A stretch of 64,000 nt of DNA from Takakia lepidozioides (GCA_030704615.1 CM060732.1:81468001-81532000); one strand, 5' to 3'; positions 14,073 through 58,076 are shown, counted from the stretch's first letter. A program made the numbers and translations. Notes: generated by a model from the sequence alone, not told the origin.

Positions 14073-14113
<41 letters not shown>

Positions 14114-25310: not shown

Positions 25311-27544
25311 ATGCGTTCTAAGGCCTCTTACTGGGCGCAGCTATGTGAGCCCTGCCAGGGCTTAGCGAGAAAGCTTGGCTACGAGACACTAGCAAAGAAG
25401 GGTCCTAGCAAACATGCTGCCACTGTCCAGGCAGAAACAGAGAAAAAAATAAAAGAGATGGAGACAAAGATTGAAGAATCAGAAGAGCGTGATAGATCAC
25501 TGCAGCGGCAAGCGGAGTTCATGAGCGCCTGGGATCCCGTCGTTATGAGCCCTCAATATACCGACGTTTTATTGCAATCGGGTGGCCACGTCTTCCGTGC
25601 ACATAAAGCTATTCTTGTAATCTCCATACCCTGAATGAGTTTCTTCCTTATTACAGAACACAGACGTAGGGATGAAGCTGAAGAGTTGTGCAGCATCAAC
25701 TACTTATCAAAACGACAGGGAGAGAGAAGAGAGTTTAAGACATCAGAAATAGAGGTAGTAGAGAAGAGAGCAAAAAGATATGTTACCCTAAAGTAAGTAA
25801 CCCTGTATTGAGCATATGATGCTGCTTCACATCTCCTGTCTCCTAGCAGATTTGAGTAAAATTCTGCAAGCTGTCACATGTCAATTTAAGAGTGCAGTCC
25901 CAAAAACATTGCAAAACCCTATGTGATGGTTCATGACGAAGGGTATCTAGCCCTGCAAGCACAAAGCACACATGCTTGCCCGTTTGCATCCGAGATTTTC
26001 TTACTCTCAAGCCATACTTATAAGGGCCACGGCCGTAGCTTATCTCATGACAGGATTTTTGGAGTTTCCATATTTGGCACCCACGCCAGAATGAGAGGGA
26101 AGGTTTTGTTCTCACATGCCATCTCCAGTAGGTGCCAGGAAAGACCAGCACTCACCCAGAATGTAGCCATTGCTTAACCATGGCTCAGCACACAGATGAA
26201 GTAATGTCTATTTGCCCACAGCTGAACCCCTCACAAGACCTGTCTGGTAATGATAGCTATTGGTACTGTAAGACACAAAATTTCAAGCTATCATGCTTAA
26301 AATCTTTTGCCTTAGCAGGGAGGGACAGTGGATGGCTGCTTTCAGGCAAACTCCTACTCTTAACCATCTCATTCTGTCAGGCTAAAAGTGGGAGAGATGA
26401 TCCTTGTTTCTCAATCGACTAGCCAGGCCAAGGTGCCAGGTACCTGAGTGTTAGCAATGGGTGGCTGACATGCCTCACTCAACAAGTTTCCAAAAATCTA
26501 TACAGAAGAGGTGGGATATGAAAGGTCAGGAATCACTGCTAAACTGAGAGCTTCGAAGTTTCATGAGCAAAGCAGTCAATGCTCTTGTATCCAGACTTTC
26601 AGACTGCCACAAGTTGTAAAGAGAGAGTTTGCGGCTGTTTGAGAGTTAACTCAAGCAATCCACGTAGAAGGAACTGCTTTGAGGTCACAAAAACAAAGTA
26701 CACATTGACCAAGAAAGGAACCGATCTCAAAACTGTTCTGATTCAACCATTGCCAATTCTTGGCAGATTTTTTCATACATCTTGGTAGCGTTGATGTTAC
26801 TCTTGATATGGTCTCTCAAGACACTCTTGTAGCTAACGTAAATGCAATTACCTGCTACTCAAAACTTCTCTCTTTACTGTCTCTTTCGAGATCGATCCCC
26901 CATCTTTTGGAAGGCCTTTAGCTTCGAGGACCAGAAGTGAGTGGCAGCTTCGCTATCTCTCCGAGAAACGTATGGCTCCTTCGATGTGTTATGTTTGGTT
27001 TTCTCCTGTACTTCTGCTTTGTCCAGAGCCCCATGGACGACGTAAAGTTTGTAATACTGTGGGTCTACAAAATTCTCAAACCTCCTTCATGATGCAGGCT
27101 GCACATTCTGAAGTCTTTCTGAAGAAGTTCAACTCAAACCAAGGGCAACTCGATGTCGGTGCTGATGTGCCAGTAGAGGTCCACATTGTGCCAGACGCAT
27201 TGGACCCGTTTATACGATACTTTTATGCAGGCCATGTGACTGACAGGGACTTGAGAAATCATGCAGCAAAGCTTCTCACAGCAGCTGAGCGATATAGTGT
27301 TCGACCTTTGCAATTGCTTTCAGAGCGCTATCTGGCAAAACACGTGACCAAAGAGACAGCACTTAGTACATGGGAACTGGGTATGGATCATAACTCGGAC
27401 AGAATTAAGGACGCTGTGTTAGATACTCTTCGAAAGGATTTGAAGGATATACTGAGGCTTAGTGAGTACCGCATCTTCCGATCCCAAAAGAATCCCGAGC
27501 TGCTTGTCGACCTTTTCGAACAGCTAGTACAAAGAATGACATAA
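25311..27544 (+). CDS. BTB/POZ protein (At4g08455/SIBP1-like), exons 25311-25616 and 27098-27544
   Basis: LCEPCQ, coiled coil, FMSAW...YTDVLLQSGGHVFRAHKAIL|gtaa...gcag|AAHSEVF...FIRYFYAG...LLTAAERYSV...NPELLVDLFEQLVQRMT*. Confidence 0.88.
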
Positions 27545-29819
27545 CTGATAGTCTCCATGTGAATTTCTGTGGAAAGGAATACGATCCTCAATTGCTCTGT
27601 TGGTTTTCGTAAGAGAAACTCGCATTTAAGACCTCAAAAACATGAAAACAGAGGGGCTTGCCTCCCCTTGTGGCGAGACCTCAAGGGTGTGTGTAAGTGA
27701 CAGTCTTAAGTTTGAAACAGCGATCGGGGTGCAGCGAATCGCACCGAGTTTCAAGAACCCTTCACTAGCACTCCCCCTCTCTATCCTCTCTCGCCTTGCT
27801 TGATCGATGGCAGTTCCCGGATGAATCTCTCTTCTGATTTCCCCTTTTCCCCCTACTTCCCTGGGCAATAGGTTAGGGGTACTGCATTATAGGCTTAACG
27901 ACTCCATGCGCTCTGTGTCTCATTTCTTAAAAGTAGTCTTGGACCGTAGTCTTTAAGTCTGAAATCTATCAGGGGTTGCTGAGGGCCGCTTTGCATTGAG
28001 ATGTGCACATATCTCTGTATCATAGAGAGAGAACAAGTTCTGAGGGAAAGAAAGGGAGCTAGAAAGAGAGTTGAGGTTACTTGATAAAAGTGTCACCCTC
28101 ATCCCAATTCGTTTTCTATTATTTCACTGAGAATGTTTGGAGGAAAATTTGGCAATAAGGAGCTGTAAGTTTTTGAAAAAGCCTTCTTCTCTCCCCACAC
28201 TCTCTCCCTCTCTTGTCAAGGCTTTCTTTTCACTTGCTTCCACAAGGAAACCTAAGAGCCTTGCAATGGAGGGCCGCTCCGCATAGCTTTTGGATTGGAG
28301 GATCAAAGTCAAAATGGACTTGTAAGGCAGCCCACTATATTCTACCATGCTCTTTCTCAAGCAACCAGCATATTGTGCGTCACTCATCCATGTTGCTGAG
28401 CTTGGGCTCAAATGTCAAATGTTGGTATGTAGCTTTTCGAGCGACAGGTTGACGTGAACCAGAGTGTCACGTCAAACAGGTCCTCACTAACTTATAAAGT
28501 GCTCCTAAGAGTACATTCCAACTTGCTCACTGCCTCCACCGGCACTGTTTTCGAAATGGTTCATCAAAAACTCCAAACCAATTGTTATCTACGATAGGTA
28601 GCTGTCTTTGTCGGTCAGCACCTCTGACAGGTACATAGTCAGCGTGAAGGCCATGAATTGAGTGGGACGTGAGTAATTGTGTCAAGGCTACCTAGCTGGC
28701 TGCCCAATAATGTGAATGCCTATCAGGTTGGCGCTCTGATGAGAGTCGGTGAGTTAGTTTGTGTGTGGTCAGAGGAATTGCTGCAGTGTGGGTCCGAGAT
28801 GATCCCGCACTGCACTAGCAAATCTCTTTGCACCATGTTTCAGTGCACTTCCCGAACTTGTCAGCCGCCACAAACGCAGAATGAAACTTAAATGGGGCCC
28901 CCTCGATAGATCTACTTTGCAACGTCAATTCGGTAAACGGCGGCTGGTGACAATATTGTCCATGAAGGTCCAAGAAATGGGCGATTTACACAAAGCACCT
29001 ATAGGTTATTCATCTCATAATGTTCGCCAGACCCTTACCATTAGTGTCTTCTTTTCCTCCCAAGTGACGGAGTTCTGATCTTCCTCTCCCTAGGCTGCAG
29101 TCAAGCTCAGACTCCACAAAGACATGAGAATTGATCAACAGATTAATCTCATCGGCAGCGTTGACGACTACGGTGAACTGTAAGTAATGCGACAAGCAAG
29201 AGAAGGCAAATGAGAGATCCTCGCAGCTGATCTTGACTCTCATTGGGACAGTCCAGAAACCACAGTGGAGACTGGAGAGCAGAACAGACAAGCTTCAGTC
29301 ATCAACAGACAGCTTCAATCTTGCACGACGATGATCGAGAACAGACAGGAAGGCGAGCAAATCGTGGCACTGCCAAGAGCATGTGTGCCACGACGCCACT
29401 GCATTCACGTCCTAATAAGGTTTATTCCGGCTCTGGGGGTTGAGCACAGGATCTGGTGAGGAAAAACCGCTTACCTGGGTAGCCGGTACGATTGTCGGAG
29501 CTCTCCCCGAAAGAAAAGGTCCGTGACATGTGCGATAAATGTATCGTGGCAGAGAGAATTCCGGGTTTTAGCCTCAAATCCCCGTTTAGTATCCCGGTTT
29601 TGTGGAGATATTGAGGTCAAGTCCCCGGGGTTAGAACTCGCCGGTTGACACTTGGGGGATTTTATATACCGTCTCTCTCGTTGGCTTGTTGCTCTCCCGC
29701 GCACATACTCGCAGAGTTTTGGTGTGGTGCAAGGAGGAGTTCGGGAAGAGTCGAAGGACCTAGGTCTGGTTTGGTTGTGAAGCTTGTGGTGCTGCTGCTA
29801 CATTCGGGGATCCGGCAGC

Positions 29820-32468
29820 ATGGGACGGGTGTCATGGCTGGTGGTCGGGCTCACGTTCTTGTTTGACATCATTGCCTTTGGCCTTGCCGTGGGAGCGGAG
29901 ACTCGACGGAGCAAGGTGATTTCTAGTTATGGATGGGAGTATGTTCTTGAGTGATTTCGGGATGTATACTGTGGATAAGCCGATATCCGTAAATGTCGAT
30001 CTCAATGGCTTGCTTGTGACCTGTGCATTCGGATCCATGACAAAGCAGTTCTGTCGATCTTGTCCGAGGGCAAGAGGTTAGGACGGCCTTGTGGGAGAGA
30101 TTTATTACTGAAATCACAGCTGATACCGTGTTCAGGTGTGGCGCGGAATAGAAAGCGCTAGGGGACGCTCTTACATCTTAGAAGCGGCGTCTTTGTGGAT
30201 GAAGTAGTAGCTCTTGGTCAGATTCGAATGTCATTTGTAGCACCAAACAAATCCATCTGTGTCCCTCTTTTAATGTTTTAGCTTTCTTCTCACTTCAAGT
30301 TCGGAGCCATTTTGTGCTTGTTTAGGGGTCGATTCTTTTGGTGTGAGATGACATTGTTCCTTCAACGTCGAATACTCTTACCAGTGGACATCTGTTCCTA
30401 GGCAGAGTGTACAGGGATGGAAGCGTACGTGGGAATGATACAGGTCTCTGAATGTAGAACTGACATCTAGTATAGGCTAATTTAGGCTTTATCCGTCTGT
30501 TGAAAAGTTGACAGTGGATAGTGCTAAGTCTCACCATAGCATCACGCCCTTTCTCATAGTGCTTTACACCAGATGTTTGGCAGTTCTTCTTGTCCTCACC
30601 TGGGGCATTCTTTATTTTCTGTCCAGAGAATCATGTTTCATTTTAACTAGCAAAGCAAGGAGATCTGAGGTGGTCTTCTAGTTTTCGAGCTTCTTGTGTG
30701 CCTGGAACTGAATTAGTTGTCCTTCTACTGTAAGTTTTGATGTGTTCCAAATATGTTACTCATGGTGAGCAATTAAATAGTAACTTTTTGGTGGGAGTTT
30801 TTAAAGGCGTAGAGCTGGATAAGCACATCTGTGCATGCACTCTTGGAAAGTGCTCCAGATGTTCTTTGATTCTTCCGGTGCAATTCAACACGTGAAAACT
30901 TAGATTGAGAGATGTCAGCCACTTTATCAACATGATTGCTTACAGAGTGGATTATTTGGTTCTCTATTTGCTTGGCATCCTCTTTGGGCCTCTTTCCATG
31001 TGACCCCCTCACTACAGGATGCTGTAGTCCAGACATTGGACCACCGTCTTATGCTCCAATGGTGAAGGGCAAAAATCCTTGCTATGTGCAAGCATTATTG
31101 GAGTATGACTGCCTAGGAAGTTCTAGAATGTAGATTATCTGTCATTGTGACCTGCTATGATTAGAGTAGAGATTGACCAGACCCCTGGAGCCCAAGAGTC
31201 TACCATTCATGTTGGCTACAAACCTCTTCACTCAGAACGAGTTGAGGGGTTTGAAGGGTCACTTGCAAGGTGTTATTCTGACCCTCGCAATGTGATGTCA
31301 ACATGTGGGGGATGGAAGGTGCTCTGAGGCTTGTTTGGATCCTATTTAGCTTGATAAGACTGTTGTCTGTGTGGTCTCCATCCAGATTGGACACATTAAC
31401 TGGTAGCCTTGTGCATTGGTGTGGAGTCATGTTTCACATTCTTAGAACTCCATCATTGCTAGGTTGAACCTAGTTGGTGAGTTCCTCAGCTGTAGTTCAA
31501 TAAGGACTTCTTTTGTGCTTGTCAGGACCTTGATCAAACACAGATTATCGGGGTGCACTGACAATATGCTGTTAAATGGGGCTAGTCTCTTTTTGGTAAT
31601 GAATTGGTTGGGATTGAGGGCATCAAACAGTGCCTCAGAGCCACATGTATTTGTGGGAGTGTAGCTGCTGTTGATGTATTGGTGGAGACCACAAACTCAA
31701 GTTCGTAAAGGGAGGGCCAGATAGAAGAAAATAGAAAAGATGGAGCAACAGCATGGTTTACAACCATTGCCTGGGTTGTGGGGTGCACTCCCTCTACTGG
31801 AAATACCAAATGGGACTGACAAGGGTGTGTGGTTTGTCCGCAGGGTACAGCTGTCCCTAATGTGACAGGGCAAGCTTTGATATGTCAGTATACTAGGGAC
31901 ATTGCAACCGGGCTGGCAGCTGGAGCCTTTTTGTTCTTGCTTGGAGGTCAGGTGTTCATTATGGTTGTCACTCGATGTCTCTGTTGTGGGGCCTCCTACA
32001 AGCCTGGTGCTGCCCGTGTGTTTGCCATTATCCTCTTCATTTTCTCATGGTAATTCACCTCTCTTCAGACCGAAGGTTGTTGGCGTTATGGACATCTCTT
32101 GTCATGTGTGTGCTTGGTTGATTTCTTGGTCTGTGGCGTAGACTGTGGTCTGACAGAAATGTGCAAGCCGTGTTAAGTGTCTATTGGGTTGTGTCAGGCT
32201 CAGTTTCATTATTGCCGAGGCTTGCTTACTAGCGGGGGCGAGTCAGAACAAGATTCACACACATGGGCTTTTTGATAATGGAGGTGCGGATGTGACTTGC
32301 AAACAAGTGCGGAAGAGTATCTTTGCTGCTGGAGCGGGCTTCACCTTCTTAACCATGCTGCTGAGCGAGATCTATTATTTGCTTTTGTCAAAGGCAGGCA
32401 ACAATGACGGAGGTTGGCAGTCTTACAAAGCTGGCGCCCCCACTGTGGGCATGACAGCCTATACTTAA
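29820..32468 (+). CDS. DUF1218 (MWL/fiber protein Fb34-like) small membrane protein, exons 29820-29915, 31844-32049, 32198-32468
   Basis: MGRVSWLVVGLTFLFDIIAFGLAVGAETRRSK | ...CQYTRDIATGLAAGAFLFLL...VTRCLCCG...FIFSW | LSFIIAEACLLAGASQNKIHT...CKQVRKSIFAAGAGF. All junctions are GT-AG and in frame. Confidence 0.92.
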
Positions 32469-33179
32469 GCCAGATCGTGCAGGACCTCCTCCCATTTGTG
32501 TCTCAGCAGACCTTTATTTTCTTTCTTATCCCCAGAGAACCAACATATGAGTATGAGATTGAACTCCAAAGTCCAGTTCAGGCATTCCACTTTTTCCCCT
32601 AGGATTTACAGTCTGTCGACCTCGAGGTTATCAAGGCCACAATTCTAGTATTTGCAGTTCGGGTCTGAAAGGTGGAGTGAGAGTTGGACGGCAGGATGAT
32701 GTGCAAGATGGACGTTGAAAAGATGATTGGTATTCTTGGAAAGGCCTGGGAACTGGAAGCTGGATTTTTTTCGAAATGCACATGACTATGTAGTTTTCTT
32801 CACCTTAGAATTGAGGGACAGTGGCTGTCGTACCAGGTTACAGAGGCTTTATGAAGCAGGGGGAAGCCCACATTGGGTTTGCAAGGTAGTATAGTTCTGT
32901 AGAGGTATGGGAATAGCCTCTCTCCCTACTTCGTGATTGCTAGATCTTGTATTTAATGCCATTATGACAGTTTTCAACTGGTAGAGTTAATCCTTGGTGT
33001 CACTGCCTTGGTGCACCTCTATGTAAAATCTTGTTTTCTCTAGTCCTTTCTGGTGTTTAAGGAAGGATCATGATGATGTATCACTAATGTCTCCACTAGG
33101 TGATTTCTGCTTGTGTATTTTTTTGGTCACATCAAACAGGTATCAAGCTTTTGGAAAGAGATCTCTCATTCACCATTGG

Positions 33180-34577
33180 TCATGCAGTCTCCACTAATCC
33201 TGTTTGCCTGGTTTTTTCTTCACTCTCAGCAGTAGTGGATGTCTCAGATACATCATCATCTGAGATGCATTCAAAGTCCTCGTCTTCTTCACATTCTGGA
33301 CCAAGCAAGACCCCAAAGAGATGTAAGGAGGGCAACAAAACAGCTCCTGTAAGTGCATGTAATGTCATTCACCGAAGTGAAATTCGTTTTTTGCATATGT
33401 TCACTTACAAATATATAGATGCAGTTAGAGCTGCCGCGAAGTGTTTGTGACACTAACGTTTTCTGTGAGAGAAAGAAACACTGGAAGTGAAGTAAGACAT
33501 TACCACAAAGTGGTCTGAATGTAGATCTCTTCAAGAGCCCAATGTAAAGCTCCAAGAGCAACTTAGGGTTCTGCTCTCTATAGTGGCGATATTCTCGGAG
33601 ATTCGCAATTGTTTTCCTGCTCTGCAAGGCCACTTGAATTGTAGCATCCCTTAGCACTTCACAGTTGTGCGTTTTGGCAAGATCAAATCTGCTAATCACA
33701 TTCTCCATTGAAATCGTATTCTCGGCCAAGTATTTCCCACAGACGTATTTCAAGTAGTCGAGCTCGAAGGCATCTCCAATAGACAGGAAATGTATTGCAT
33801 GCTTCTCCAAAACTTGAGTGGTGATGTCGCCCGTGTAGAAGAAGCGCACAAAGGCATGCAACTGCTCGTATGACATATCGTCAAAGATAACGACCCCACC
33901 CTTACCGTCCTTCAACCCTGCGGTGCTGTCATCGATCATGGCTTCCAGCAACCGCGATTTGCTCGCCTGTGTGTATAAATGTAGGTGAGAGATTCTCGAG
34001 AACTTCCAACCCGGAGACATACAGACACCAGCTCATTCACATGGCAACGATCGCTACCATGTCCGAAGCCATACTCGGAAGCATTCACAGCTACTAATTT
34101 GAATTCACGTTTCCAAAAACAGTCCATCAAAGGAGAATTTCTTTTTGTGAACCTGTAGGAGGGAGATTCGAATGGGGAATACAGTGGGGAATACTGAATT
34201 ACGTTTAGACAAGAAAGTTACAAGAATGAACTTGTGGCCTTGTACAACTTGATCGGCTGCTTCGTTAGGTTGGGAAGCCCTTTCAGCCTGTGCAGGAGTA
34301 TACCCAGCATTGGCAGCAGGGTCAGCTGTTGGACTGCTGTGATCGGGAGTAGCACCCTTATTGGTATCGTGATTGTCAGGCGCTGCAAGATTACTCTGAG
34401 CTGCCTTGAACGAAATGTCTGGAGGAAAAAATGTTTCTGTATCCGTCCACGTACTCAAGAAATCTACTTGGCCAACCCTTGCCTTGCTCTCTTCTTTCAA
34501 TCTTCTCAATCTCCTCAGAATATCTTCAAATTTCTGGTCTGATTTTAAATAGCAGCTTTCGCAATATACACTTCCAC
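33180..34577 (-). CDS. BTB/POZ module with an acidic tail; exons 34577-34222, 33966-33504, 33295-33180; lacks its own in-frame ATG (internal part of the upstream gene, or a pseudogene)
   Basis: YCESCY, coiled coil, FLSTW...GHKFIL|gtaac...acag|ASKSRLLEAM...FVRFFYTG...NPKLLLELYIGLLKRSTFRPLC-G|gtaatg...ccag|ECEEDEDFECISDDDVSETS...ETA*. Confidence 0.7.
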
Positions 34578-34816
34578 CTGTGCACACCCGAATAGAGCCC
34601 GGGGAAATCTCTTCATTTGCACCTCATGACAAAGAAAGGATTTGCTGTAGTCTCCTGAGTCTCTAGTCTCCTAGCTCATGAAATTTCTGAAATAAAGGGA
34701 GGAAAATGTCCTGTACATACTACACATAAATCAGAGTACTGCAACGCTCATGTCCAATATTCTGCAAAGACCATGTCTCAGAAGAGCTCACAATCCATTG
34801 AGGTACAATGCTCGAC

Positions 34817-36421
34817 TCATTGACTTTGGTAGAAGTAGCCTGATATCTTACCGTGCTTGGACAGGTGACATGATGGATGGTAAGGCGTCACATAGGAAGA
34901 GTCCCATACAACAGGTCCTTCTGACTGAAATTTTAGAATGGGATGCAGATGTATAGACTGCGTTGGATCCTGGAACGGTTTCATGCACAATGCGCATCGA
35001 TAATCGAACCTGCGGCAGACTTCCTGTTTGTATTGAGACAAGAGTCGACGCATGTTTTTAAACCTCTCGTCTTCGTCGCCTTGCCTTCGTTGCAAATTAC
35101 CTAGGGAAACAGATCATACATAGCCGTTGAACTGGGGCTTCAAGCTCAGCTGGTAGATTTCTGACGTCCACACATACAGCCATTGGAAAGACCATGAAAA
35201 AGTGACACAGGAGTATTATTGTGCAGAGCCTATGGCGTATGATCCAAGTCTACTGTCTCAGCTGTAAAATGTTGAGTACTCACTGGCGGTACCTGGCTTG
35301 CGCACAGTTGTCTTTCTTAGGAGCTTTTCATACAGCTCCAGGAGTAATGGCAAGTCCTCTTGTACATACAAATCGTGTTCCTTGAGTGTTGGAATTTCAT
35401 CTTGACCAGCGGCCATAAGAACTCGAAGTGCAGCTTTTCTATTTACTTCAGAATCACATTGTTTCGCAATATCAAAGAGACTGATTGCATTCTCCTTTGA
35501 AACCACAGCTGAAAGGTACCTTGCACACACTGATTTCAGGAGCTTCACTTCATATGTCCGGGCTAGAAACAGGAGGTCTGCTGCGTGTCTTTCCAGAACA
35601 ACAGGGCAAATCGTAGCAGTGTAAAAGAAGCTAATGAATGCGCTCAATTGCTCGTGAAGCATATCTTGCATGTCAACGATGGGAATCGCTCCTGGAGTTG
35701 TCACAGCCTTCTCCTGTCCGGTCGTTCGCATTTCCTCGCTCTCAATATTAGCAGGTGGACAAAACATTGTTTTAAACAGCTGCGATCTGCTTGCCTGGGT
35801 ACCTTGCGCCACCGTACACAAAATTCTAAGATCTCTTCTAAGACGCATCTACCAGCCTAACTGTAGAACTTTTGGAGAAGAGAGCGTACAGTAATATGAC
35901 CAACGGGTCATAACCTTATTGTGCTGCGACTTTCCTGTGCCATCCCCCAGCGATGTAAAAACGCCATACACGGGGGTTGCATGTATACATAGAGAGAGGT
36001 GATAATGACTGGACATGTCTTACCAGTTAAGCATTTAAGTTTCTTTCTTTGAACCTTCTTGCGTCTCCATTCAATTATCCTACTAGGTGTGGAACTTCTT
36101 GTAAGCAAGGAGAGTGGAACAGACGAGAGGTTGAAAAGGGATTACAAGAATGAACTTGTGAGCTGGTATGGGAGGTCCATCGAGTGGTTGCAGTAAGACA
36201 TCGTGATGCAGACTTCTTGGAGGAATCCAGGTACTCAAAAACTCCATGCGGGGTATCCCAGAGTTTAATGACTTCACTCTGGCCTTGTATATCAGAGGGT
36301 GGCATGCAACGCAGTTTTTGCAACAGCGGACGACCCCTTCTGCCAGTCCGCACAATTCACACGCCACTCTGGTATCTGAGAAGGACGACGATGTTGTTGA
36401 AGCGCTGGGGGCAATCTCCAT
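34817..36421 (-). CDS. BTB/POZ protein with a C-terminal HNH-like module; exons 36421-36146, 35794-35293, 35100-34817 (or 35100-34852 spliced onward)
   Basis: CELC...CKNCVAC, FLSTW...DVLLQPLDGPPIPAHKFIL|gtaatc...ccag|ASRSQLFKTMF...FISFFYTA...LPLLLELYEKLLRKTTVRKP-G|gtaccg...ccctag|GNLQRRQ...FDYRCALC...IHLHPI...YHPSCHLSKHG. Confidence 0.75.
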
Positions 36422-37477
36422 CTTTACAGGTATTTACACAGCTCGCTTTTGAAACTGGTTATGCTCCTGCCAGACCCCTTCAATACATATCTAACGTACC
36501 TATAACACTGGTGTCTGTTGGGGTGTCATGATTGGCCTTTTACTTACATCTTGCAATCTCTCTCAACCATTGCACCCTCTTGAAATCTCTTCAACCTCGC
36601 TTGGCGAAATGTGACTGGCCCTCAGACTTCCAAAACCTAAATTGTTCGCAGAACCTTGGGAGGGTTAAGATTCTCCTCGTATCTCCTGACTATTATTGCT
36701 CATGATTTTGATGTCCAGGCTGAGAATTTCTGGCCGTTTGGTCCAGCCTCCACCTAATCATTTTAGTTCAGATAATACAAATAACTGCATGCTTTCCCTG
36801 ATAATAGAGGAAGTGAAAGAGCATTGACTAGGAATGAGTATTGTGGGATGAAATGTACGAATACATGAGGAAAAACACAAGCAAAGAACTCATAGCCTGG
36901 CCACACATACCATTTGCCTCCGTTGGCGCAGGACGCACGTCGAACAACGGCGTCTTTCCAACATTGAGCCTAACCAACCGCCCTGATAGCCAGGCCACAC
37001 ATGACGGATGCAAAGCCTCAACGCAGTTCCCATAACGCAGGAACTTGGCGTGCAACGGTGTCAGGCCATTCCTAAACGCAGGCGGGGCGTCCGCTCGACG
37101 TAGTTTTCTAACGCAGGAGAACCTGCGTTATGCAGATGGAAGTGCGTTCTTTGAAAGCTGCAACCTTTAATAGGGCGCCACCAATGTGGGAAGGCGCCAT
37201 GAGAGCGGAAAAGGAGGAAGTCACCCTTTGCCTTGTTGGATCTTAGCAACGAATCCCTGCTATTGAAATTGGGTCCCACCAAGGAGCCACCAAGGAAGAA
37301 TGGGGCTTGTGTGGCCGCTCCCTTAGCAGGAGGGATGAAATCAGCAGTAAGAAGCGGACGGAGACCACACCGCACAATTTCGCGGTTGCACTCAAAGACC
37401 CACAGTGTGGAGTTAGGTGACAACACCGTGGAGTTAGGTGACAAAATGATGTTAAGCTAGAAGTACCTGCCATGGGG

Positions 37478-38975
37478 GGTTGGTATCGCGTGAGCACAAC
37501 CCACGGTCATGGGAGTTTTATGTTTTCTTAACTTCGGTCATAGGAGTTATATGTTTCCAAAGCGGAAAAAAACCTTCACTACAGGAAAAGGGGAGGGGGT
37601 TACTAAAGCCCCCTTTTGGGGCGGGTAGAAGCCCCAGATTGCGACGCCCGGGCGTCGCAAGAATATCGTCGCTAATTTGCAACGTATGGGGTCGTTAGGT
37701 AACGCGGGCGACTTGCGACCTCATAATATATATATATATATAGCCGATTTTCACATCAAAAAACAAGCACAAAGGGGGGCTCAAACAGTGTGCATTGCCG
37801 CACACTGTTTGAGCTTCCAATTAGGGGTGTTTACAACTTGCTAGAGTGGCCGAAGGTGGCCATTTTCTCATCAAAAATCAAGCACAAAGGAGGGCTAAAA
37901 CAGTATGCGTTGACGCACAAACAGAAGAAGACGATAATGTTGTTCCAATTAGTGAAAGTGAGACTCAAAACGATAGTATTGCGAATGATTGTAATACACT
38001 AATAGAGTCGGATCCAGACTACATTCTAGCTGGCGTTGAAGGGGCCAATCCATTTGGTGAAAGAACAGAGATGAACACTGTGGATGGATTTCATTATACC
38101 GTGGATTATATAAGCGCTTCAAGCTCCGTCATCCTAGCGCGGGGCGCCCCCAGCGACGCTTTTGCAACGCCGGGGGTCACAATGTCCACCCAAAAAAAAA
38201 AAAAAAAACGGATGCGACCCCCAACGTCACAAGAAAAAAAAAACCGTCGCAACCCCCACAGCGACGCACCATCATCGCATGTCTCGGCGCCCTTGGGGGC
38301 CCCCTTTCCCCCTTCATGCCATGTTGCGACGGTTGTGCGTCGCAGCGGTCTTGGCGTCACAAAAAGCGGCCGCGGGGGTAGCGTCGCAGGCCCAGCACCG
38401 CGCCCAGCATGGGGGCGCGGTTGGCGTCGCTAAACCCCCCATTTGCAGTAGTGCATAAGCAGGTATAGATGACCGGTGCATATATACGGTACGTCTGTAC
38501 CAATTCAGCGAGGCGAAAACTTCAGTGGTGTAGCCAGAAACCCTAAACTTATAGCGGCAGACAAGTTTCGCATTGAGGAATACTTGGTGATATGGGCACA
38601 AACCTACGCAGCAGTGGGTTTCGCATTGGGAATAGCTTGAGTCGAAACTTTCTATATGAAATCCCATCACCCATAAATCCCACATCCAATTCAGGCTAGT
38701 TAGTACAGAGTTTCGTCGTGCAAAATTATCCTTCAGTGATTTCTTCTCAGGCTATTTGGTATAGAGTTTCCCTGTGAGAAATTAGCTATGGGCGAGGACC
38801 TACAATTTGAAGTGGTCTAACTGCACTCTCGCCCCTGTTATGGAGAAAAAGCCACGCTTATAGGGTAAGATGTTCATCAAGTATAGGGGCTATTTGTTCT
38901 TTATGTGTTAGTTTCGGATAAGTTTCGCCAAGTTCATTTCATTGTAGAAATTTCACAGAAATTTCCTGAAAATTC
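37478..38975 (+). mobile_element. Non-autonomous dispersed repeat, interrupted by a CACTA insertion; related copy in the opposite orientation at about 62415-63236
   Basis: ttggtatcgcgtgagcacaacccacggtcatgggag (37480) and ataggggctatttgttctttatgtgttagtttcg (38883) match the reverse complements at about 63200-63235 and 62475-62510. Confidence 0.7.
37577..38453. mobile_element. Non-autonomous CACTA (EnSpm) element, 877 bp
   Basis: Termini CACTACAGGAAAAGGGG ... CCCCATTTGCAGTAGTG. Flanks CTT/CAT form a 3-bp TSD with one mismatch. Subterminal GCGTCGC/GCGACGC motifs are repeated. Confidence 0.8.
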
Positions 38976-39136
38976 GGGGAATATGCCCTTGTGCTCATTT
39001 GAGCATGCTTACGCGCTCCCAACCTCCCTGCCAAGCCTACGATATGCGTGTCGTTGGCCACAGAGGAAAATAGACAATATGGGTGTACTTGTGCGGAAGC
39101 TGTCAGAGTGCGGACATGAGCCATGGCAAATAAAGG

Positions 39137-39420
39137 TCATCCTAAAGGGTCGCCTTGGCGAGTTCCATCCTCTGATTGAATAATGGAGCATTCACCCAGG
39201 CGAGAATGATGACTACAATAGACGGGAGTGGCGAATGCATAGAATGATTGAACAAACGGAATGAGCGGGTGGAAATCTCCCCCAGCTGAACGGAACTCTT
39301 GAAAGATAGCCGACCGTGACACGGTGTTGAAAGCATTGGTAACGTCGACCTGCAGAACCACCCAATCCGGATGAAGATGGAGGGCGGCACGAATCCCTTG
39401 AACCACCGCCTCACAACCTC
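39137..39420 (-). mobile_element. Reverse transcriptase fragment of a CRE/R2-type non-LTR retrotransposon
   Basis: GGCEAVVQGIRAAL...VVLQVDVTNAFNTVSRSAIF...IPFVQSFY...IIQSEDGTRQGDPLG, covering RT motifs DxxNAFN and GxRQGDPL. Confidence 0.75.
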
Positions 39421-40411
39421 CTAGAGTGCCGAGATCTTGGTCTGGCTTGAAGCCCTCGACAAAAAGCGGAAGGATATCCTCAGTTGATGGGAAGCTTCTT
39501 ATGAAAGTCGGTCTATGCTTCGTGCCTGGGATCATCGACATCACCAATAGACCCTTGGTGCATGTGGGCCCTCATGAACCGGCCCCATGATCAAAAGAGA
39601 CTAGTCCCTCGAGACTCATGCAGGTCTTCACAATTACAGATATAACCCATATCCCCAAAAACGTCGTAGCGAACATCGATTGAGTATTCTATCCAAAGTT
39701 GAGCGTGTGCTTGACATGAAGACTTATGAATTATAATAACATATGGCTGATTGGCCTATGCAAACCTCAAGAGAAAACCCTTTTGAAACGTCAAACCACC
39801 CACCCAGTACTATAAAGCATCCACCACAGCTGAGGAAGCTCAGAACTTATGGGACAAAGGAAAATGAAAACACAAGATGGAAAGAGAAAGTGGGCCCACC
39901 ACCACAACAAAAAACTAACTTCAATCTCCACCAATTCTCCAAAAAGAGAGTTCAATTGGTCCATTTCGTTCGTACAAACGTATAGACCCTTCCATAAACA
40001 AGACGAGCAGTAACCGTTTACGGGCTTGGTTGTTTGGAACTCACATGGGAGACTTTAGAAATATGTAGTGTTTTCAGAGAACAACTGCGAGAGGGCTTGT
40101 ATTTTGCTCAAAATCTATAACTTCCCATATATCTCACCCAAGGGTTTTTAGACTAAGACAACTGGTGTCAATACCTTTTGAATCTTACATAAAGTGATCT
40201 CCAGAAGTTTTCTGAATGTGCTAAGATTAAGATAGTGCCATCAATGTTGTGACTGTGTTGGTGTGGTGACAATACCCTCTCAATTTGCAGATGATGGCCA
40301 CTTAATGACGAGATGCACAAGTATGGTTGTATAGGTTGAATCTGCACTAAGTAGGGCTAGTTTGGGATGGTGGCTTACTTGCTTAAAGGTGGCTAGTGAC
40401 TGGTGCCACCC

Positions 40412-41044
40412 GAGGTTGGGTAGCGTGTGAGCATGCTCACGCCAGTAGGCGTGAGCACAAAGGTATTATTCTCAATATTCCAAAATACTCTAGAGAATAT
40501 GCGATTGCGAAACCAAAATGCACTCACGCAGTGAGAAATACGAAACTATGTGAAAACCGTGCTCACACGAAAAAAAATCATGAAATTAATCGTCCAAAGC
40601 TTAACTCGCGTGAGCACAATGACCCACAAATGTATCCGCCAAAACTCAAAGATTAGCGCACGTAAACAATGTGGCATTTGGTAACATTGTGTGTAGAACA
40701 TCCCCAAGAACCACCCAAAAAATGGGTTTCGCCAGCGAAATGCAAATGGGTTTCGCACGTGAAACTTGTATGTTCGCCAGCGAAACCTGGTTTCATCGGC
40801 GAAATTAGGGTTTGGTTTTTGTTTTTTCTTAAAGGTTTCTCCCTTTCAAGCTCCCTCTATATGTTTAAGTTTATATTTAGAAACGACGGAGACCCTTTTA
40901 ATGCAGAAAGACCCTATGTCCGTCTATTTATATGTATTTCCGCTAACATATATATCACCCCTATAACCGTGCTCAAGCGGCGATTTTTTGGTGCTCACGC
41001 CATACTTTGTGCTCACGATATACCAATCCCTGTGCTACCCGAAC
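40412..41044. mobile_element. MITE-like element with repeated GTGAGCAC/GTGCTCAC subterminal motifs
   Basis: Ends resemble GGGTAGC...GCTACCC. The left end gaggttgggtagcgtgtgagcatgctca also occurs as reverse-complement fragments near 38990-39030 and 58350-58395. Confidence 0.45.
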
Positions 41045-42225
41045 AATTTTGACGTTAGCCTCAAGCTTGTCCTGGTTATTTTTTCCAGAACATGAGTTCC
41101 ATTTCCCTTTAAGAAAAAAAGGGGGTATACAAACACTACTGATCTTTTTGACAACGTCCATGTAGGAAGAACTCCGTTTCATGCTGAGTCACCAACATTG
41201 GAATTCCAGTGCAAAGAAGAATGATGAATAGACCTCGTCCATTCATCTCTTGGAAGAGAGAAAGAAACGTCAGTCGGGGGTCTTCCTGGAGGAAAATAAG
41301 CCTGAAGTAATGGGGAGAGGAGATTGTGCTGAAGTCACCGTTATGTTGAGTTGACAGCTTTCAATCAATCATGTAAGCAAGAATAAATGAAGCCCGTCCA
41401 AGCTCTTCTAATTGAGGGGCACAGGTAGTGCATGACTATATCATTGAACAAATAAATCAATACCAGACTGTATTCGAGAATCATGTAGGCAAGAAAAAAT
41501 GAGGCTGGCCCGAGCTCTTCAAGTTCAGGGCACAAGTAGTGTGCATGACTATATTATTGAACAAGAACTTACAAACAGGGTTGCTTCAATACTGAAGTGT
41601 ACCTGAGTACCAATGCAGATTAAAATCTATCTAGCTTTGTATATCCGGCACTAAGTAAATATGGGTGTGTAAGTCTTGTGACTTCAAGCAATAGAAGCAA
41701 GCACACTGACGAAAAAAAATTACTTCAATTCATGGACCCTTGCCATAGTCACTCCCCATAAGCCCTCATGGAGTTGGTGGCAAGAGACACGATTCCAGAG
41801 GGTTGAAGGAAACAACTCTCAGGTTTTAGAGAGATGACCATAACTGGTATATTGAAACAATTTTTGGTAGCGAAACATTTTCTGGAAGTGACAACAGTGT
41901 AGAATATAAATGGTATAGTTTTGCTACCATGCAATATCTTTCCCCATTGGGTCTCTAACTGGAGAATCCAACTTCATGGTGGGCCCATGCTAGACATTAG
42001 ACGAAGAGAGGGTAGAGGCCACCACTTGAACCAAGGTACCCTCAAGAAACTGAAACCTTATAGCAATCAATGCCCTCCGGAAATGAGGACTCCAGAGAAT
42101 GGAGTGCGAACCATCCAAAGCTGGACTAAACAATCTACATAGGCAAAAAGGGAAGAATGCATTGAAACAGCTCTTTGCTGAGAAATCATGGGAAAAAAAT
42201 TGTACGCTTTGGCATGTAACTCTAC

Positions 42226-49381
<7,156 letters not shown>

Positions 49382-49495
49382 GGCTGACCCAACCGGCTTG
49401 GATGCAGACTCGCCTCCGTCCTCCCTCCGTCCTCCACAGACATACAGAACGGAAGCTCCCTCAAGCCCTAATCGCCATCGCGAGAAGCTTACAAG

Positions 49496-49511
49496 TAGGG
49501 TTTTAGGGTTT
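49496..49511 (-). promoter_or_regulatory. Tandem telo-box (AAACCCTA x2) upstream of the LysRS start
   Basis: TAGGGTTT TAGGGTTT on the + strand, 115 bp upstream of the LysRS ATG. Another copy lies near 50000 in the shared divergent promoter. Telo-boxes are typical of plant translation-machinery promoters. Confidence 0.6.
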
Positions 49512-50224
49512 ACACAACCTTACTAATCGATAACATGGACGAGTATCATCCGTCCATCTATAACTTTGGGAACACATTAGAGACGTTTACAAAACCTACG
49601 GGAACCTGCGAACAGGTCTTTCACCGAGATCTTTCGTCCCTGGCCCGATTGTAACCTGAGTTGGACCATTCTTTCAAATCCTGGCTTTGGAATGTAAATA
49701 GAATTACCCTTATGGTGGTATTTTTAATAGCATTACACCGATGCTTAGAGAACAACCTTCATGCTGCAAGTCTTGCGCTTCGTAGAGTTTGAGGATAGAA
49801 AGGAGCGGATTGCGTGAGATGTTGAAACTCGTTCGTCCACTCGTGGCCGGATGTCACGCCGGGTTTCGCCAGATTTCGCCGCGGGTCTGTTGAGAGACAA
49901 GCAAGGAAGGGGAGAGTGTCGCCAGGTTTCGCCGCGGTAGGTTGTGTAGGTGTCGACACCTCGAGGCGTCCGGAAGGAGGTCTTATCCTGTGCTAGAGTT
50001 AGGGTTTCAATTCGGGCCCTCCCTGTCTTTGCATGCCTCTGAGCAAGATCGATCTTGCTTGAGAGATTTTGCAGATTGCTCTGCTAGAATTCGAGAATTT
50101 GTGCGATTTGAGTGATGGGCTTTTGCCTGGAGAATGCGGAGGAAGCTCCTCCTGCAATTGTGGGAGGTTGAATGTTCCGGGAGTGCAATTCGGTGCAGGA
50201 AGTGCTGGATGAAAGTGCTGGGAA

Positions 50225-53200
50225 ATGAGGATGACGACACATGAGGCCACAACGAGTGCAAAGCTGTTTCCGAAGAAACGAAATCTGAGAGCGAGAGCTT
50301 CAGATACCGTTAGGAGTTTGAAATCGCAGGTGAAACGGTTGGAGAGACAAAGGGAGTTCTTGAGTCTTTGGAAACCAGACACGCACATTGGGGCAGATGT
50401 TGAGGGTTCCTATGTGGATGTTGAATTACGGGCCTCTGATGGTGTCCGAATTCATGCTCACAAGGCAGTCTTGGTCAGCTTTTGTGCCTTTCTCCCCATT
50501 GTTTACCTCTCCTGATTCTATCCAGAGACTGTAGAGGCGGACTTGGTAGACAGTAGGAAGATAAATAGATACTCGGATCCCTGCAAGCATGTAGCATGCA
50601 CAGTGAACTCTAAAGGAAATTGTGAACCATCTAATGAACTAGGGACTATCTAAAGGACTGAGGCATGATCATTACCCCCACAATTTCCTTGTTCAAGCAA
50701 CTACTATCAATTTCCTGGAGCCTTGCAGCCATAGACCCACCAAAGGGAGAGTCTTGTGAATGTCGTATGTCTTACTCCAATATAGTGAGGATGAACTAAG
50801 TGCCCGCTAGTCTGTCAGCCTCATGTGGTCTTTGGTAAGAGAGTAGATGTTGTTTATCCATGGAATTGAACTATTTGGGCAGGGGATGGTGGATTATGCT
50901 TCAACATGGACTCACAAGGCTAATTGCAGGTGGCCAAGTCCAAAGCATTTGAGGCGATCTTTCGAGCGGATAAAAATGTCAAGGTTTTGGAGGTACCCGA
51001 CATGGATCATGAGGAATTAAAAGCCTTTGTAAACTTTTTCTACACTGCAACTGTCAGCATCAGTGTTATGGCAGAACGGATGACCTCTTTTCTGCGTGCG
51101 GCAGACAAATATAAGGTCCATTATCTTACAGTACTATGTGAGGATGCTCTGGTGGCCAACCTTTCTAGAGAGAATGCAATCACTACTTTTGATATAGCTA
51201 AGAAGCATTGCTCCATCAATGCCAAGGAAGCCGTGCTTAAGAAGGCGATCAAAATGGGGGAACTCTCAACATTTGATGAGTACAAATTGTATTCCCAAAA
51301 GGATCCCGGATTGCTGCTGGAGCTATATGAGCAATTGTCAGAACGGATAGGGCCATTACTGGCTAAAAGACGGCGAGTCACTCCAGGCAAGTACCACTAG
51401 CAATGTACCACTAGCAATGTAGTCCACATCATCTCTGTCATGTTGCCAACCAATGTATCTGAAAATTGTAGTCTGGTAGGGTTGAAGGCCTACTATTGCT
51501 CAATATGCAACCACTCTGCAAAAAGGAAGCATAGTCACAGTGGAAAGACCAGTTCCGTAACTATTGATGATTCTGTATATGTGGGGGTGTCCGCTGGACT
51601 GGTATTGTTGCGGTGCATTGAGGCAAGTAGTCTCTGCCTGGACCACCTTAGTGCAACAATCCCTTTCAAACTGACTAGGCTCCAGAGAGGAATTTAGACA
51701 TTTGTGGGTTGAGGATGGAACCTCTTAGTACATCATCCCGTGCTGATGGATTGGTTTGAAGCCATGGCAGCAGAGTAGCCAAGGCATACCAGTGTATGGG
51801 GTCTTTCCATAACCGCAGTAGTTTACCTTTTGCTCAATGATTTTTTTGCAATTTCTCTACTGAAAGCAGAACTCGAGAAATTGTGCATTGTATGCAAACT
51901 ATTGTTCAGTGCAGTTTGAGACTTTATCCTTTTATAAAAATTTAGGGTACTTGCCATAAACCTGATTTACATTGACTTTAATGGGGTTCAACTGTGTGGG
52001 CATGTTGTGCCTAGCACCTTTTAGCAGTTTGAAAGAATCTATTCTACAATGTAGATTTGAACTGAGGCTCTTATGATGGCTAATCTATCTAGTAGTTGGA
52101 ATCCAACTTTTTCATCGAACCTGAATTTGGAAAGCCAATATAATATACAGAATAGCTTGCAGATTATGCTAAACCACTTAAAGTTGGTTGGTTTTTATTG
52201 CTTGATTTCTGCATGCAGAGAATGGCACTGGTGAGCATGAGGTGAACAATACCTGCATCATGTATGATGGGGTAAATGACAAATCAGACACTGATGAAGA
52301 TGAAGGTGAGGACGACCAGAAGGGAGATGATAAAGAGATCAAGCAAGAAGGAGAGGGCGATGCGACTTTAGGTAATTTGATGACTTTCTAAGTTTGATGT
52401 CTACGTGTCTGAGCAACAGTCTCTGTTTGTTTTGGTGGGTCCCAGTTTGCCTTGTTTTATTGCAGGATTGCTCCAGGCATAGTGTGGGACTCATCAATTA
52501 GTTTGACACACAGAATTGGCTGGTGTGCAGGAGGTTCAGTAGCCCTCAACGGATTGCCTCCGTTTGGGGGTGGTGGTGGAGCAGGGTGGTGGCCTGGAGC
52601 AGCCATTCAACCCCAGCATGGGCGACCCTTTCCTGCTGGCTATGATAAGAGCATGTATGGTCCAGGTCAGAGGCCGGCTTTTGATGGGTCCATGATGCCC
52701 AGTTCACCCTATGGTGTGGCTCCACCCTTTATGCCTCAGATGTATACTGGTGGCATTCCTAGGTGAGAGTCATGGTCTTACATTCTTCATATTTTCCTGT
52801 CCATATTAGGTTGACAGCCCATATTCATTTTTTCAGACTGACGGAGTTGGCTACAGTCTACATATTCTACTGAGGGTTGGCCAAATAATAATCATTGGTG
52901 CTCTATCATATACAATTTTGTGTAGGTTTTTTTATATTCCAATGGCTTGTAATTCAAGGTTCTCATGCATCATACTACTTGAGGGTCTGCATTACAGGAG
53001 TATGTATAAGATGTACCAGCCCAGAGTCACAATCTTGATGGGCACATGCTAGTGGCTGCTGATCTGGTGCTAAAAGAGTTCTGGAAGTGTTTCTGCCTTT
53101 CCAATTCCCGCTATTTATTCTGTTCGTTTTAAGAGGCTGGGCTCACTCTGTATACAGGTATTGTTGTAACTATTGAGTTATGAATGTGACTTGATTCAGA

Positions 53201-54352
53201 GTATTTATGGGAGCTGTGGGCCCGGGGTTGCCTAGTCCTGGGGAAAGGCCTGCCGGTGGCGAGGAGCTTGTCATTCAAGAACACAAAGGGAAGAAGATGT
53301 CAGAAGCCCAAGCCAAACTTGAGGGTAAACGGGGACAGAACTGGACTAATAGTGAGGTGGAAACTCTGATTGCGTTGAGGGGTGAAATGCATGACGAGTT
53401 TGAGAGAAACAAGCAGAAACAGGGTATGTTACCTCTTACAAACTCTTTACGTATTGGAACGTTTTTGTATGCTCTCCTAAAACCCTGAAAAGAATTGTGC
53501 AGGGACTGGTGCAGAGGGAAGTGTGCCCTGGACCAGGCCCTGTTGATGGGCACATGTAGTGGGGTTGGGCGAGGCCAACATAGGCCACATTACCTTCCCC
53601 ATTGTCCCTTTAATTTAAACCCAACAAGAGCTCTGGACCCAGACAGTTGCCTCCAATAGTGTATAGCAGGTCATGCTGTCAGCACCACTCAGAAGCCTCG
53701 TGTTCAGATTGACCCAAAGCCGTGCATTTAGCAGGAGGGGCTGGAGCTGCAGAGCACATGACTGAGAAGCAGACCTAGGAGGTCACATAGGCTAGTTATG
53801 GGCCCAGGCCAGTTTGATGGGGACCAGTGGTAAGGCTGTATTTCTTTGAGGTTAGATAGGTGGAGTAATCTGAGCACCAATTTGCTTGTTGTTTCCTAGA
53901 GAGAATTGGCTCCTGAGTCTCAAGGCAATTACAGAATTGATGAACTATGGTTCATGGTTCAATCTTAGAGGTAGTATTGAGGAAAATATCCAGTTCTAAA
54001 ATCTCATGGTTAACCAGCAGCTTTTTTTGATTGGCTTGCAGGTGTAAATACTTGGAGCAAACTCCATGTCAGGATGCTTGGAATGTGCAGAGGGTTCCGC
54101 AAAAGTGCAAATGCTTGCAAGAAGAAGTACTCTATCCTTTATAATGAATACAAAAAGGACAGAGAATCTACTAACAGTGAGTCAGGTAGCATTAACAAGA
54201 ACAGCAAGAAGTGTGCATACTTTGAGCAGATGGACATGTGGCAACTGCATAGGCCTCGTATCAAAAGCCATGCTGATGCTAGTGCTGGAGACACTACAGA
54301 TAGTCCCTGCTCTAGTAGGGAGGAGGAAATAGAGATCAAAGAGGAAGAGTAG
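50225..54352 (+). CDS. BTB/POZ - acidic - Gly/Pro-rich - trihelix (Myb/SANT-like) fusion protein; exons 50225-50473, 50930-51386, 52219-52371, 52531-52762, 53200-53423, 54042-54352
   Basis: BTB: FLSLW...YVDVELRASDGVRIHAHKAVL|VAKSKAF...DPGLLLELYEQL. GC donor CCAG|gcaagt at 51387. All later junctions are in frame. Trihelix: KRGQNWTNSEVETLIALRGEM...GVNTWSKLHVRM...FRKSANACKKKYSILYNEYKK...CAYFEQMD. Confidence 0.8.
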
Positions 54353-54736
54353 GATATGTCCATCCAACCCTTAGGCAACAGAGAAGGATATAGTAAGACT
54401 GAGGGCATGCTCAAGAATATGAAAATATAAAGCACACAAATTAGCTTTTCGACTAACCAATGCGTTCCTTCAGGGAATGGACAGCCACATGGCTTCACTT
54501 GTTGGAATTGCATACATCAATTTCCCTGATTGTCATGTTTGTGCCATACATGTATTGGTCCTCTTGAGCTAGAATTAGTCTCAAATGAAAATAGGAGAAC
54601 AGGTGGGCAGCATTCAAGAGCCTACTTGACAGTGTGTCCAAACTATTGGTCCATACTACTGGTGGATGTTTGATGTATCCCATGTTCATTTGTGCACAAC
54701 CAAGACCCCTTCAGGCCCTGAACTCTGGGTACACAC

Positions 54737-56550: not shown

Positions 56551-57183
<633 letters not shown>

Positions 57184-57211
57184 TTAACTAATAAACTAAA
57201 TGATTTAGATC

Positions 57212-57421
57212 TTAAATTATCATGAAATCCAGTAAATTTTCTTGATTCTTCATCTCTTTTCCATTCTCGATGGGATTTAAGTAAAATTCGGGAAGTAAAC
57301 TAAATAATTCTCGATCTGGAACTTCTTTTGGTACGATTCCTTCCGGTTGAGACAAAATTTGATCCGCTAGATTTAAATAAAATTCACGGACGTAGTTGAG
57401 AGAAGGTTGGGATTCAACCGT
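57212..57421 (-). pseudogene. chlL: chlL 3' fragment, NUPT
   Basis: Reads [49 protein letters not shown], then an apparent frameshift to [11 protein letters not shown]. It lies directly upstream of chlN, as in plastomes. Confidence 0.85.
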
Positions 57422-57521
57422 ATAGATTAATATATATCTTAAGGAAAAAATGCTTCTAAAGCGAATAAATATTTCGGCTCTTTCATCCCATCAAAATTAA
57501 CAAAATCTGGGAGACTTTGTT

Positions 57522-58076
57522 ACGAATTGGCAATCTGAATGGCTTCGAGTAGAACCTATAATAGGTTCTAGAAGAATAAGTAATTTTTGCAGGGCGTGCA
57601 TTATTCTGTTGGGTGCATTAGGATTCTTTTCAGTTGGAATTTCTAGTCACTTCGGTAAAGATTTAATACCCTTTCTATCATCCCAGCAAATTCTTTTTGT
57701 CCCACAAGGAATTGTAATGTGCTTTTATGGTATTGCAGGTCTGTTTCTCAGCCTCTATTTATGGCGTACAATTTTGCGGAGTGTAGGTAGTGGCTACAAC
57801 CAATCCGATAAACGAGAAAAAATCATTTGTCTTTTTCGTTGGGGATTCCCCAAAGAAAATCGTTGTATTCGTATCCAATCTCTCATGAAAGATATCCAAG
57901 CAATACGTATGGAGGTTCGCGAAGGTATTTATCCCTGTCGTATCCTTTATATGAAAATAAAAGGTCAACAAGATGTTCCTTTAACTCGTATTGCGGAAAA
58001 CTTAACTCCGGGAGAAATGGAGGAAAAAGCTGCGGAGTTGGCTCGATCCTCGCGCGTATCAATCGAAGGACTCTAA
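57522..58076 (+). pseudogene. ycf4: ycf4 (photosystem I assembly factor), full-length NUPT copy with an ACG start
   Basis: ACG-AAT-TGG-CAA-TCT-GAA-TGG...GSRRISNF...[19 protein letters not shown]...FRWGFP...[16 protein letters not shown]. Confidence 0.92.

Follow-up and report, generated by a model that had tools for sequence, protein, structure and literature searches.

A 64,000-nucleotide (nt) window of the Takakia lepidozioides genome (GCA_030704615.1, CM060732.1:81468001-81532000; positions are counted from its first letter) contains four paralogous exon pairs that encode BTB domains, here called cassettes 1 to 4 (C1 to C4). One of these, C4, is confirmed as part of a single gene with a single mRNA of ~2.0 kb, in which a BTB-BACK part is joined to a C-terminal trihelix domain, and the same arrangement is present in diverged relatives. 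The window is nuclear land-plant DNA with spliced genes whose introns measure 160-1,500 nt. A first-pass annotation had described the cassettes as a modular adaptor family, in which a conserved phase-1 splice site behind the BTB part (the 'socket') accepts different C-terminal domains.

We aligned run contigs to a 5,001-nt stretch covering C4. Two runs (X1 and X2), from two studies, each yielded one spliced contig of ~2.0 kb, beginning at 50019 in X1 and 50042 in X2 and ending at 54528, and the contigs of both runs share five identical joints. The blocks as aligned (50019/50042-50472, 50929-51383, 52216-52369, 52529-52760, 53198-53422 and 54041-54528) carry 1-3 ambiguous letters at the joints; placed by splice class, they give exons at 50019-50473, 50930-51386, 52219-52371, 52531-52762, 53200-53423 and 54042-54528 on the + strand. 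Four of the five joints are GT-AG. The second came out of the alignment as 51383>52216, with an ambiguity of 3 letters, and only when placed at 51386>52219 does it belong to a known splice class (GC-AG). This junction, from a GC donor to an acidic exon, had been predicted by the first-pass annotation; besides its presence in spliced contigs from both studies, its phases are conserved in diverged relatives. Depth was zero in introns 1-4. Intron 5 was covered by one low-depth contig (X1, 53594-53879, depth 3.2) with a 4-base insertion and one base difference, which may stem from unspliced RNA, from carried-over DNA or from an allele.

The C4 frame is open from the ATG at 50225 to the stop at 54350-54352, giving 1,626 nt and 541 amino acids by arithmetic and exon-wise translation. 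Exon 1 (50019..50473) holds the 5' untranslated region (UTR) and the coding sequence for a coiled coil and the first conserved motif, and is spliced at 50473>50930. Exon 2 (50930..51386) encodes the BTB-BACK part and a basic patch, RRRVTP-G, after which intron 2 (51387..52218), the socket, interrupts the frame in phase 1. Downstream are an acidic exon (52219..52371; 153 nt, phase 1 at both ends), a Gly/Pro/Met-rich exon (52531..52762), an exon with a linker and the first trihelix helix (53200..53423), and a last exon (54042..54528) with trihelix helices 2-3, an acidic C terminus, the stop and the 3' UTR to 54528; all are in the contigs. The exon halves of the trihelix domain match Pfam Myb_DNA-bind_4 (PF13837) at positions 2-30 (20.3 bits) and 35-87 (26.8 bits); with the exons searched singly, each half falls under the 27-bit cut-off, and together they cover the profile. 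For the last exon, the ESM Atlas returned a match of 0.92 with 176 shared features, the look-alikes being Myb/SANT-like clusters.

Relatives of C4 occur in environmental assemblies from JGI, ENA and Logan, and a scan of JGI metagenome contigs with C4 exon 2 returned five loci. In L006, which is 60% identical to C4 in exon 2, all six exons are present in order and with the same phases in an intact frame of 578 amino acids; CCAG|gcaagt recurs as the donor, and the following exon again opens AG-AAT-GGC-ACT. Exons 2-6 are carried by L005, L007 and L008. Across L005-L008, identity to C4 is 48-50% in the Gly/Pro/Met-rich exon, 55% in the linker exon and 56-57% in the last exon, and the acidic exon is conserved throughout L004-L008. 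At this codon, the donor of L004 (75% identity) is GT, with the acidic exon behind it, and in L001 too GT stands where C4 has GC. In L003 (53% identity, from a sister subclade), exon 2 is contiguous with the acidic region, with no intron at the socket site, and a phase-1 donor after the acidic region is followed by a similar, Gly/Pro/Met-rich exon. On the data from L006, L004 and L003, the reading frame across the socket is therefore real in four lineages.

Promoters and start codons of their own for the downstream exons had been named at first pass as a finding that would speak against the fusion. No conserved start exists there: L004 lacks an ATG where the window has its internal Met in the acidic exon, and L006 has none until late in that exon. 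The contigs bearing P0001 and P0008, at 1-2 kb, are too short to reach the downstream exons, and tblastx of the window flanks against L006 found no synteny outside the gene itself. The BTB-trihelix arrangement is older than the divergence from relatives of ~59% identity. C4 is transcribed and conserved across diverged relatives, and so represents a functioning gene rather than an artefact of annotation.

The intron that follows the basic patch in phase 1 is an ancestral feature. Fern BTB 'hypothetical proteins', annotated at ~290-324 amino acids (Adiantum nelumboides L7F22_055248, A. capillus-veneris GOP47_0029319 and Ceratopteris richardii KP509_38G026300), belong to the same family and share its domain order, its two intron positions and phases, and a short terminal exon. 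The Ceratopteris locus (L009) has three coding exons: AHRVIL is followed by an intron in phase 0 and QKRRRK-G by one in phase 1, and the terminal exon encodes 31 amino acids rich in Ser, Asp and Cys. The conserved socket proposed at first pass is thus found in Ceratopteris at the same place and in the same phase, followed by a short tail exon. Fern genomic open reading frames (ORFs) read through the equivalent donor as ...RKG|KL, and L001, L004 and L006 have their donors at the same codon as C4. Unlike C4, the fern genes form a separate clade and bear only the ~30-amino-acid Ser/Asp/Cys tail, with no DNA-binding domain. The ancestral plan would then have comprised a first exon with zinc knuckles, coiled coil, FLSxW and the first BTB strands, a second with the rest of BTB, BACK-like helices and the basic patch, and a third with a short Ser/Asp-rich tail, separated by introns of phase 0 after H[KR]x[IV]L and phase 1 after the basic patch.

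Self-tblastn of the whole window identified exactly four BTB exon pairs: C1 at 25311-25616 and 27098-27544 (+), C2 at 34577-34222 and 33966-33504 (-), C3 at 36421-36146 and 35794-35293 (-), and C4 at 50225-50473 and 50930-51386 (+). The four paralogous cassettes of the first-pass annotation are thereby borne out, each with an exon 2 above the gathering cut-off of Pfam BTB (PF00651, 20.5 bits) at 27.8, 31.4, 28.4 and 47.5 bits for C1 to C4; exon 1 of C1 and C4 also matches the start of this profile (positions 8-35). Its motifs could be read directly from the sequence: F[LM]SxW (FMSAW in C1, FLSTW in C2 and C3, FLSLW in C4); a phase-0 intron with a GT donor directly after HK[AF][IV]L (HKAIL, HKFIL, HKFIL and HKAVL in C1 to C4) and an AG acceptor; a terminal helix of the PxLLx[ED]L[YF] type (PELLVDLF, PKLLLELY, LPLLLELY and PGLLLELY); and three phase-1 donors, CCAG|gtaccg in C3 (exon end 35293), TGTG|gtaatg in C2 (33504) and CCAG|gcaagt in C4 (51386). 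The proximal stops at which these exons would end by read-through (35258, 33289 and 51400) coincide with ORF ends. The coiled coil, described as common to all four, is clear in C1, C2 and C4 and doubtful in C3, and the donors, described as lying 12-18 codons past the helix, include that of C4 at ~20 codons after ELY. Family N-termini matched no Pfam domain. At 29-42% identity in exon 2, the cassettes are therefore old paralogues and not recent copies.

C1 is the copy that, as the first-pass annotation had it, stops after the helix. Its exon 1 (25311..25616) contains one CxxC, a coiled coil, FMSAW and the start of BTB (a weak Pfam BTB match at residues 82-104), and ends at HKAIL|gt in phase 0; exon 2 (27098..27544) contains the remaining BTB and BACK-like helices and closes with QRMT and a stop, with no tail exon. 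P0047, a spliced C1 homologue, has the identical exon 1-exon 2 junction and likewise terminates right after the last helix. The loss of the tail is therefore also old, C1 having presumably lost an ancestral one. In a BTB-only tree, C4 fell in a clade supported at 99 with L004, L006 and P0001-P0009, C1 fell in a clade supported at 100, and C2 and C3 were long-branched sisters (support 91, branches 0.76-0.78). A representative search also gave matches with two BTBs in tandem, P0015 and P0019 among them; these are MATH-BTB models and were set aside as not relevant. Taken as a whole, the best explanation, which we consider quite probable, is that the four cassettes are ancient paralogues within a land-plant family of SPOP-like BTB-BACK proteins.

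C2 and C3 appear from their sequences to be fast-evolving tandem sister copies. C3 exon 1 (36146..36421, -), read from the sequence and the ORF list, has an ATG, zinc knuckles (CxxC...CCxxC) and FLSTW and ends HKFIL|gt; its exon 2 (35293..35794, -) encodes BTB-BACK and ends RKPG at a donor that sits at the ancestral intron position. The first BTB exon of C2 (34222..34577, -; codon log-odds +0.15) contains YCESC, a coiled coil and FLSTW and ends HKFIL|gt. Position 34577 had been taken as the start of this cassette and is actually a phase-1 acceptor (cag|GT); the open frame upstream is bounded by a TGA at 34626-34624, with no ATG between. C2 exon 2 (33504..33966, -) encodes BTB-BACK, ends PLCG, and is the only one of the four to match Pfam BACK_BPM_SPOP, weakly (19.2 bits, under the 27.4 cut-off). 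Read-through from its donor adds 70 codons up to the stop at 33289, which score -0.14 bits per codon and are intron-like. A predicted acidic, Ser-rich terminal exon of ~38 codons (33180..33295, -; acceptor tccag|AA) fits the frame, scores +0.26 bits per codon, and has the position and character of the fern terminal exon. On this sequence evidence, splicing to this exon as an ancestral-type tail is fairly probable, and C2 most likely would have retained what C1 lost. At 34222-34440 (-), C2 also has a low-complexity insert of ~50 amino acids rich in Pro, Ala, Asp and Asn, between the first BTB strand and HKFIL, that the other three cassettes do not have.

Between C3 and C2 lies a predicted HNH-like exon (34852..35100, -) of 249 nt, with acceptor ccctag|GT, donor CACG|gtaaga and a read-through stop at 34817. 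Like the acidic exon of C4 it is symmetric (phase 1 at both ends) by arithmetic, splicing being shown for the C4 series only. It joins in frame to the C3 donor and, through its own donor, to 34577 in C2, and could act as a zinc-finger exon linked to C3 upstream and C2 downstream. An internal ATG at ~35049 is followed by CxxC as in family N-termini. The codon score of its frame (-0.001) is the best of the three and lies above the 99th percentile of intron windows. Like the beta-beta-alpha-metal (HNH) nucleases, such as T4 endonuclease VII and the Cas9 HNH domain, the candidate exon has CxxC, H-L-H-P and HxxCHxxKH; the first His and the CH..KH segment can be made out on visual inspection. Unlike them, it has no Pfam HNH match and no evident middle Asn, and all scores are under significance. 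The first ESM Atlas match scored 0.95 with 170 shared features, and HNH clusters made up 18/30 matches. A single-sequence model (predicted local distance difference test, pLDDT, 73) placed HNH nucleases in the top rows of Foldseek (E 0.25-3) and in nearly all of the top 17 rows of VIA (Z 3.1-4.9), both below significance, with T4 endonuclease VII, Cas9 HNH, Cap5 and retron HNH as leads. Pfam gave no family at E <= 0.1 except chance zinc-finger rows, the PF01844 profile was not matched, and there was no PDB sequence match. Support for the HNH-like call is weak but concordant.

To which protein this exon contributes is finely balanced. The first-pass annotation took it for the C-terminal plug of C3, and we lean slightly towards use of the joint 35293>35100, which the frames allow. 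An alternative of about even standing is that it is no such plug and forms instead the first coding exon of C2 (from the ATG at ~35049, with splicing 34852>34577) or an internal exon of a read-through gene of the form BTB3-HNH-like-BTB2-acidic tail. C2 itself has no in-frame ATG; the exon's donor agrees well with the plant consensus and would keep the frame on splicing to 34577; both ends of the exon, which measures exactly 249 nt, are in phase 1; and the exon would place M...CxxC ahead of YCESC, the family N-terminal pattern. In either model, moreover, the C3 stop is <=~200 nt from the next coding exon, which leaves scant space for separate UTRs and a promoter. Against this, a seven-base mini-exon at ~34798 (ATGGATT|gtgagc) also joins 34577 in frame and could supply the C2 start, and the predicted long helix of the HNH-like model begins upstream of the internal Met. 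The exon may be one that C3 shares with the next gene, or may be the next gene's own, and membership of a C2-containing product has about an even chance. That the finger is within some BTB-containing protein we regard as likely, and that the exon is non-coding as unlikely. Between this exon and C2, at 34781-34798 (-), the sequence ATG-GAT-TGT-GAG-CTC-TTC-TGA (M-D-C-E-L-F-stop) resembles V-A-C-E-L-C-G of C3 and may be a disabled or intronised original C2 start.

Of the three domain fusions claimed at the phase-1 site, one independent acquisition is demonstrated (the C4 trihelix), and a lineage-wide modular adaptor system so far rests on that acquisition and the ancestral intron. The HNH-like module does join the C3 donor in frame, as claimed, but its own donor fits C2 and it has an internal ATG. 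Several results weigh against the overall explanation. HNH support fell below significance in every single test (no Pfam match, Foldseek E >= 0.25, VIA Z <= 4.9), the exon had no sequence homologue in a protein search, and the C2 ORF (243 amino acids) had none in the searchable length range. A profile search with P0011 and exon 2 of C2 and C3 returned only fern relatives of P0011 and no transcript-derived C2 or C3 products. For C4, runs X1 and X2 are only guessed to be RNA, as judged by the spliced form of their contigs, which leave room for further isoforms, for instance one that retains the intron and ends at 51400. Finally, C4 has a three-residue gap opposite M-E-E of SPOP, the phi-x-E motif.

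This gap bears on the function of C4. Its BTB-BACK part would make the protein dimeric or oligomeric and its trihelix part would place it on DNA, and C4 may be a transcription or chromatin factor that associates with itself, or else a CUL3 adaptor tethered to DNA; the latter and a self-associating trihelix factor without CUL3 appear about equally likely. As to the adaptor role proposed at first pass, the nearest solved structure to C4 is that of a CUL3 adaptor, SPOP (phmmer, E 7e-10; SPOP residues 220-368), with an alignment that runs through the BACK region. The phi-x-E site does not support such a role. This motif, in the alpha3/beta4 loop, is the main Cul3 contact and has the largest buried surface of any residue in BTB/Cul3 structures, and E85A in the phi-x-E of KLHL3 severely disrupts KLHL3-Cul3 binding (PMC3616122). 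Given the gap, CUL3 recruitment by C4 is therefore something we infer and not something we found, and on sequence grounds CUL3 binding is doubtful. Nor is phi-x-E visible at that place in C1, C2, L001, L004 or L006, and none is conserved in the C4 clade; the more distant family members P0012 and P0013 have M-K-E and M-R-E there.

It is a serious alternative, somewhat short of an even chance, that C4 is a trihelix transcription factor whose BTB-BACK part serves self-association only, as in animal BTB-zinc-finger factors, with no CUL3 ligase. The missing contact in C4 and in L001, L004 and L006 fits this, as does the BACK region of SPOP, which mediates higher-order self-association (PMC3616122). 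Set against it are the closeness of C4 to SPOP and the loop alignments, which are uncertain at the phi-x-E site in a comparison that covered that contact region only. A more sweeping alternative, that C2 and C3 are decaying lineage-specific duplicates with chance ORFs for HNH-like and acidic 'exons' and that only C1 and C4 are working genes, could draw on their long branches, the failure of protein searches to find close relatives of C2 or the HNH-like exon, the missing start codon and low-complexity insert (in the first BTB hairpin) of C2, and the many ORFs of 90-130 codons in the window, but is improbable, as all four C2/C3 BTB exons are free of stops and frameshifts despite ~42% identity and score as coding in the right frame, their splice sites are intact at both ancestral intron positions, and three methods gave concordant HNH leads for the HNH-like frame.

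Ancient SPOP-like paralogues are the preferred explanation, and we compared them with known systems. With SPOP and the plant BPM proteins, which are MATH-BTB-BACK CUL3 adaptors, the final helix aligns, and the basic patch of C4 coincides in position with the basic stretch at the SPOP C terminus. The window cassettes differ in having no MATH domain, with zinc knuckles and a coiled coil at the N terminus instead, and in what follows at the C terminus, which is a tail, a trihelix domain or, perhaps, a finger of HNH-like type. The C4 trihelix matches that of plant trihelix (GT-factor, Myb_DNA-bind_4) factors across both exon halves, and differs from theirs in being fused behind BTB-BACK. Animal BTB-zinc-finger and BTB-HTH factors resemble C4 in layout, with an N-terminal BTB self-association module, a long low-complexity linker and a C-terminal DNA-binding domain; they have another DNA-binding fold and a ZBTB-type rather than SPOP-type BTB, and the plant form would be of independent origin. 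Full-text literature searches found no description of a BTB-trihelix fusion, which may exist unremarked in genome annotations.

In animals, proteins that combine BTB with a DNA-binding domain make up a major class of regulators, and the known plant BTB partners include MATH, TAZ, ankyrin and NPH3. A BTB-trihelix gene lets one test directly whether plants target a BTB oligomer, or the activity of a CUL3 ligase, to specific DNA sites. From the introns comes a dated example of an old phase-1 intron that let a terminal tail exon be replaced or extended by foreign exons. A bolder possibility, which we consider unlikely, is that this ancestral intron was used more than once for nucleic-acid-binding grafts, giving both the conserved trihelix and an HNH-like finger that links a double-BTB protein (BTB3-HNH-like-BTB2-acidic tail), and that the products are DNA-tethered CUL3 ligases or oligomeric chromatin factors; if true, these would be of a kind undescribed in plants.

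The BTB cluster has as neighbours a DUF1218 gene (31829-32465, +) and a class II lysyl-tRNA synthetase-like gene (~42.5-49 kb, -). Between the C2/C3 pair and the latter is a weak reverse-transcriptase fragment (39140-39547, -; PF00078, E 0.01). An intronless ORF of 400 amino acids at 17623-18822 (-), with an F-box and a Kelch/KIB1-4-type beta-propeller, is another ubiquitin-ligase substrate receptor, ~7 kb off the cluster. At 13950-14615 (-), an ORF with a eukaryotic Pus10 N-terminal domain (PF21237, E 4e-7) is probably one exon of a pseudouridine synthase gene. Adjoining plastid-type ORFs in a low-GC (0.377) stretch at 56551-58073 encode Ycf4 (+; PF02392, E 2e-59) and a nitrogenase-component-1-type oxidoreductase of the chlB/chlN kind (-; PF00148, E 5e-8), and are probably plastid DNA inserted in the nuclear genome.

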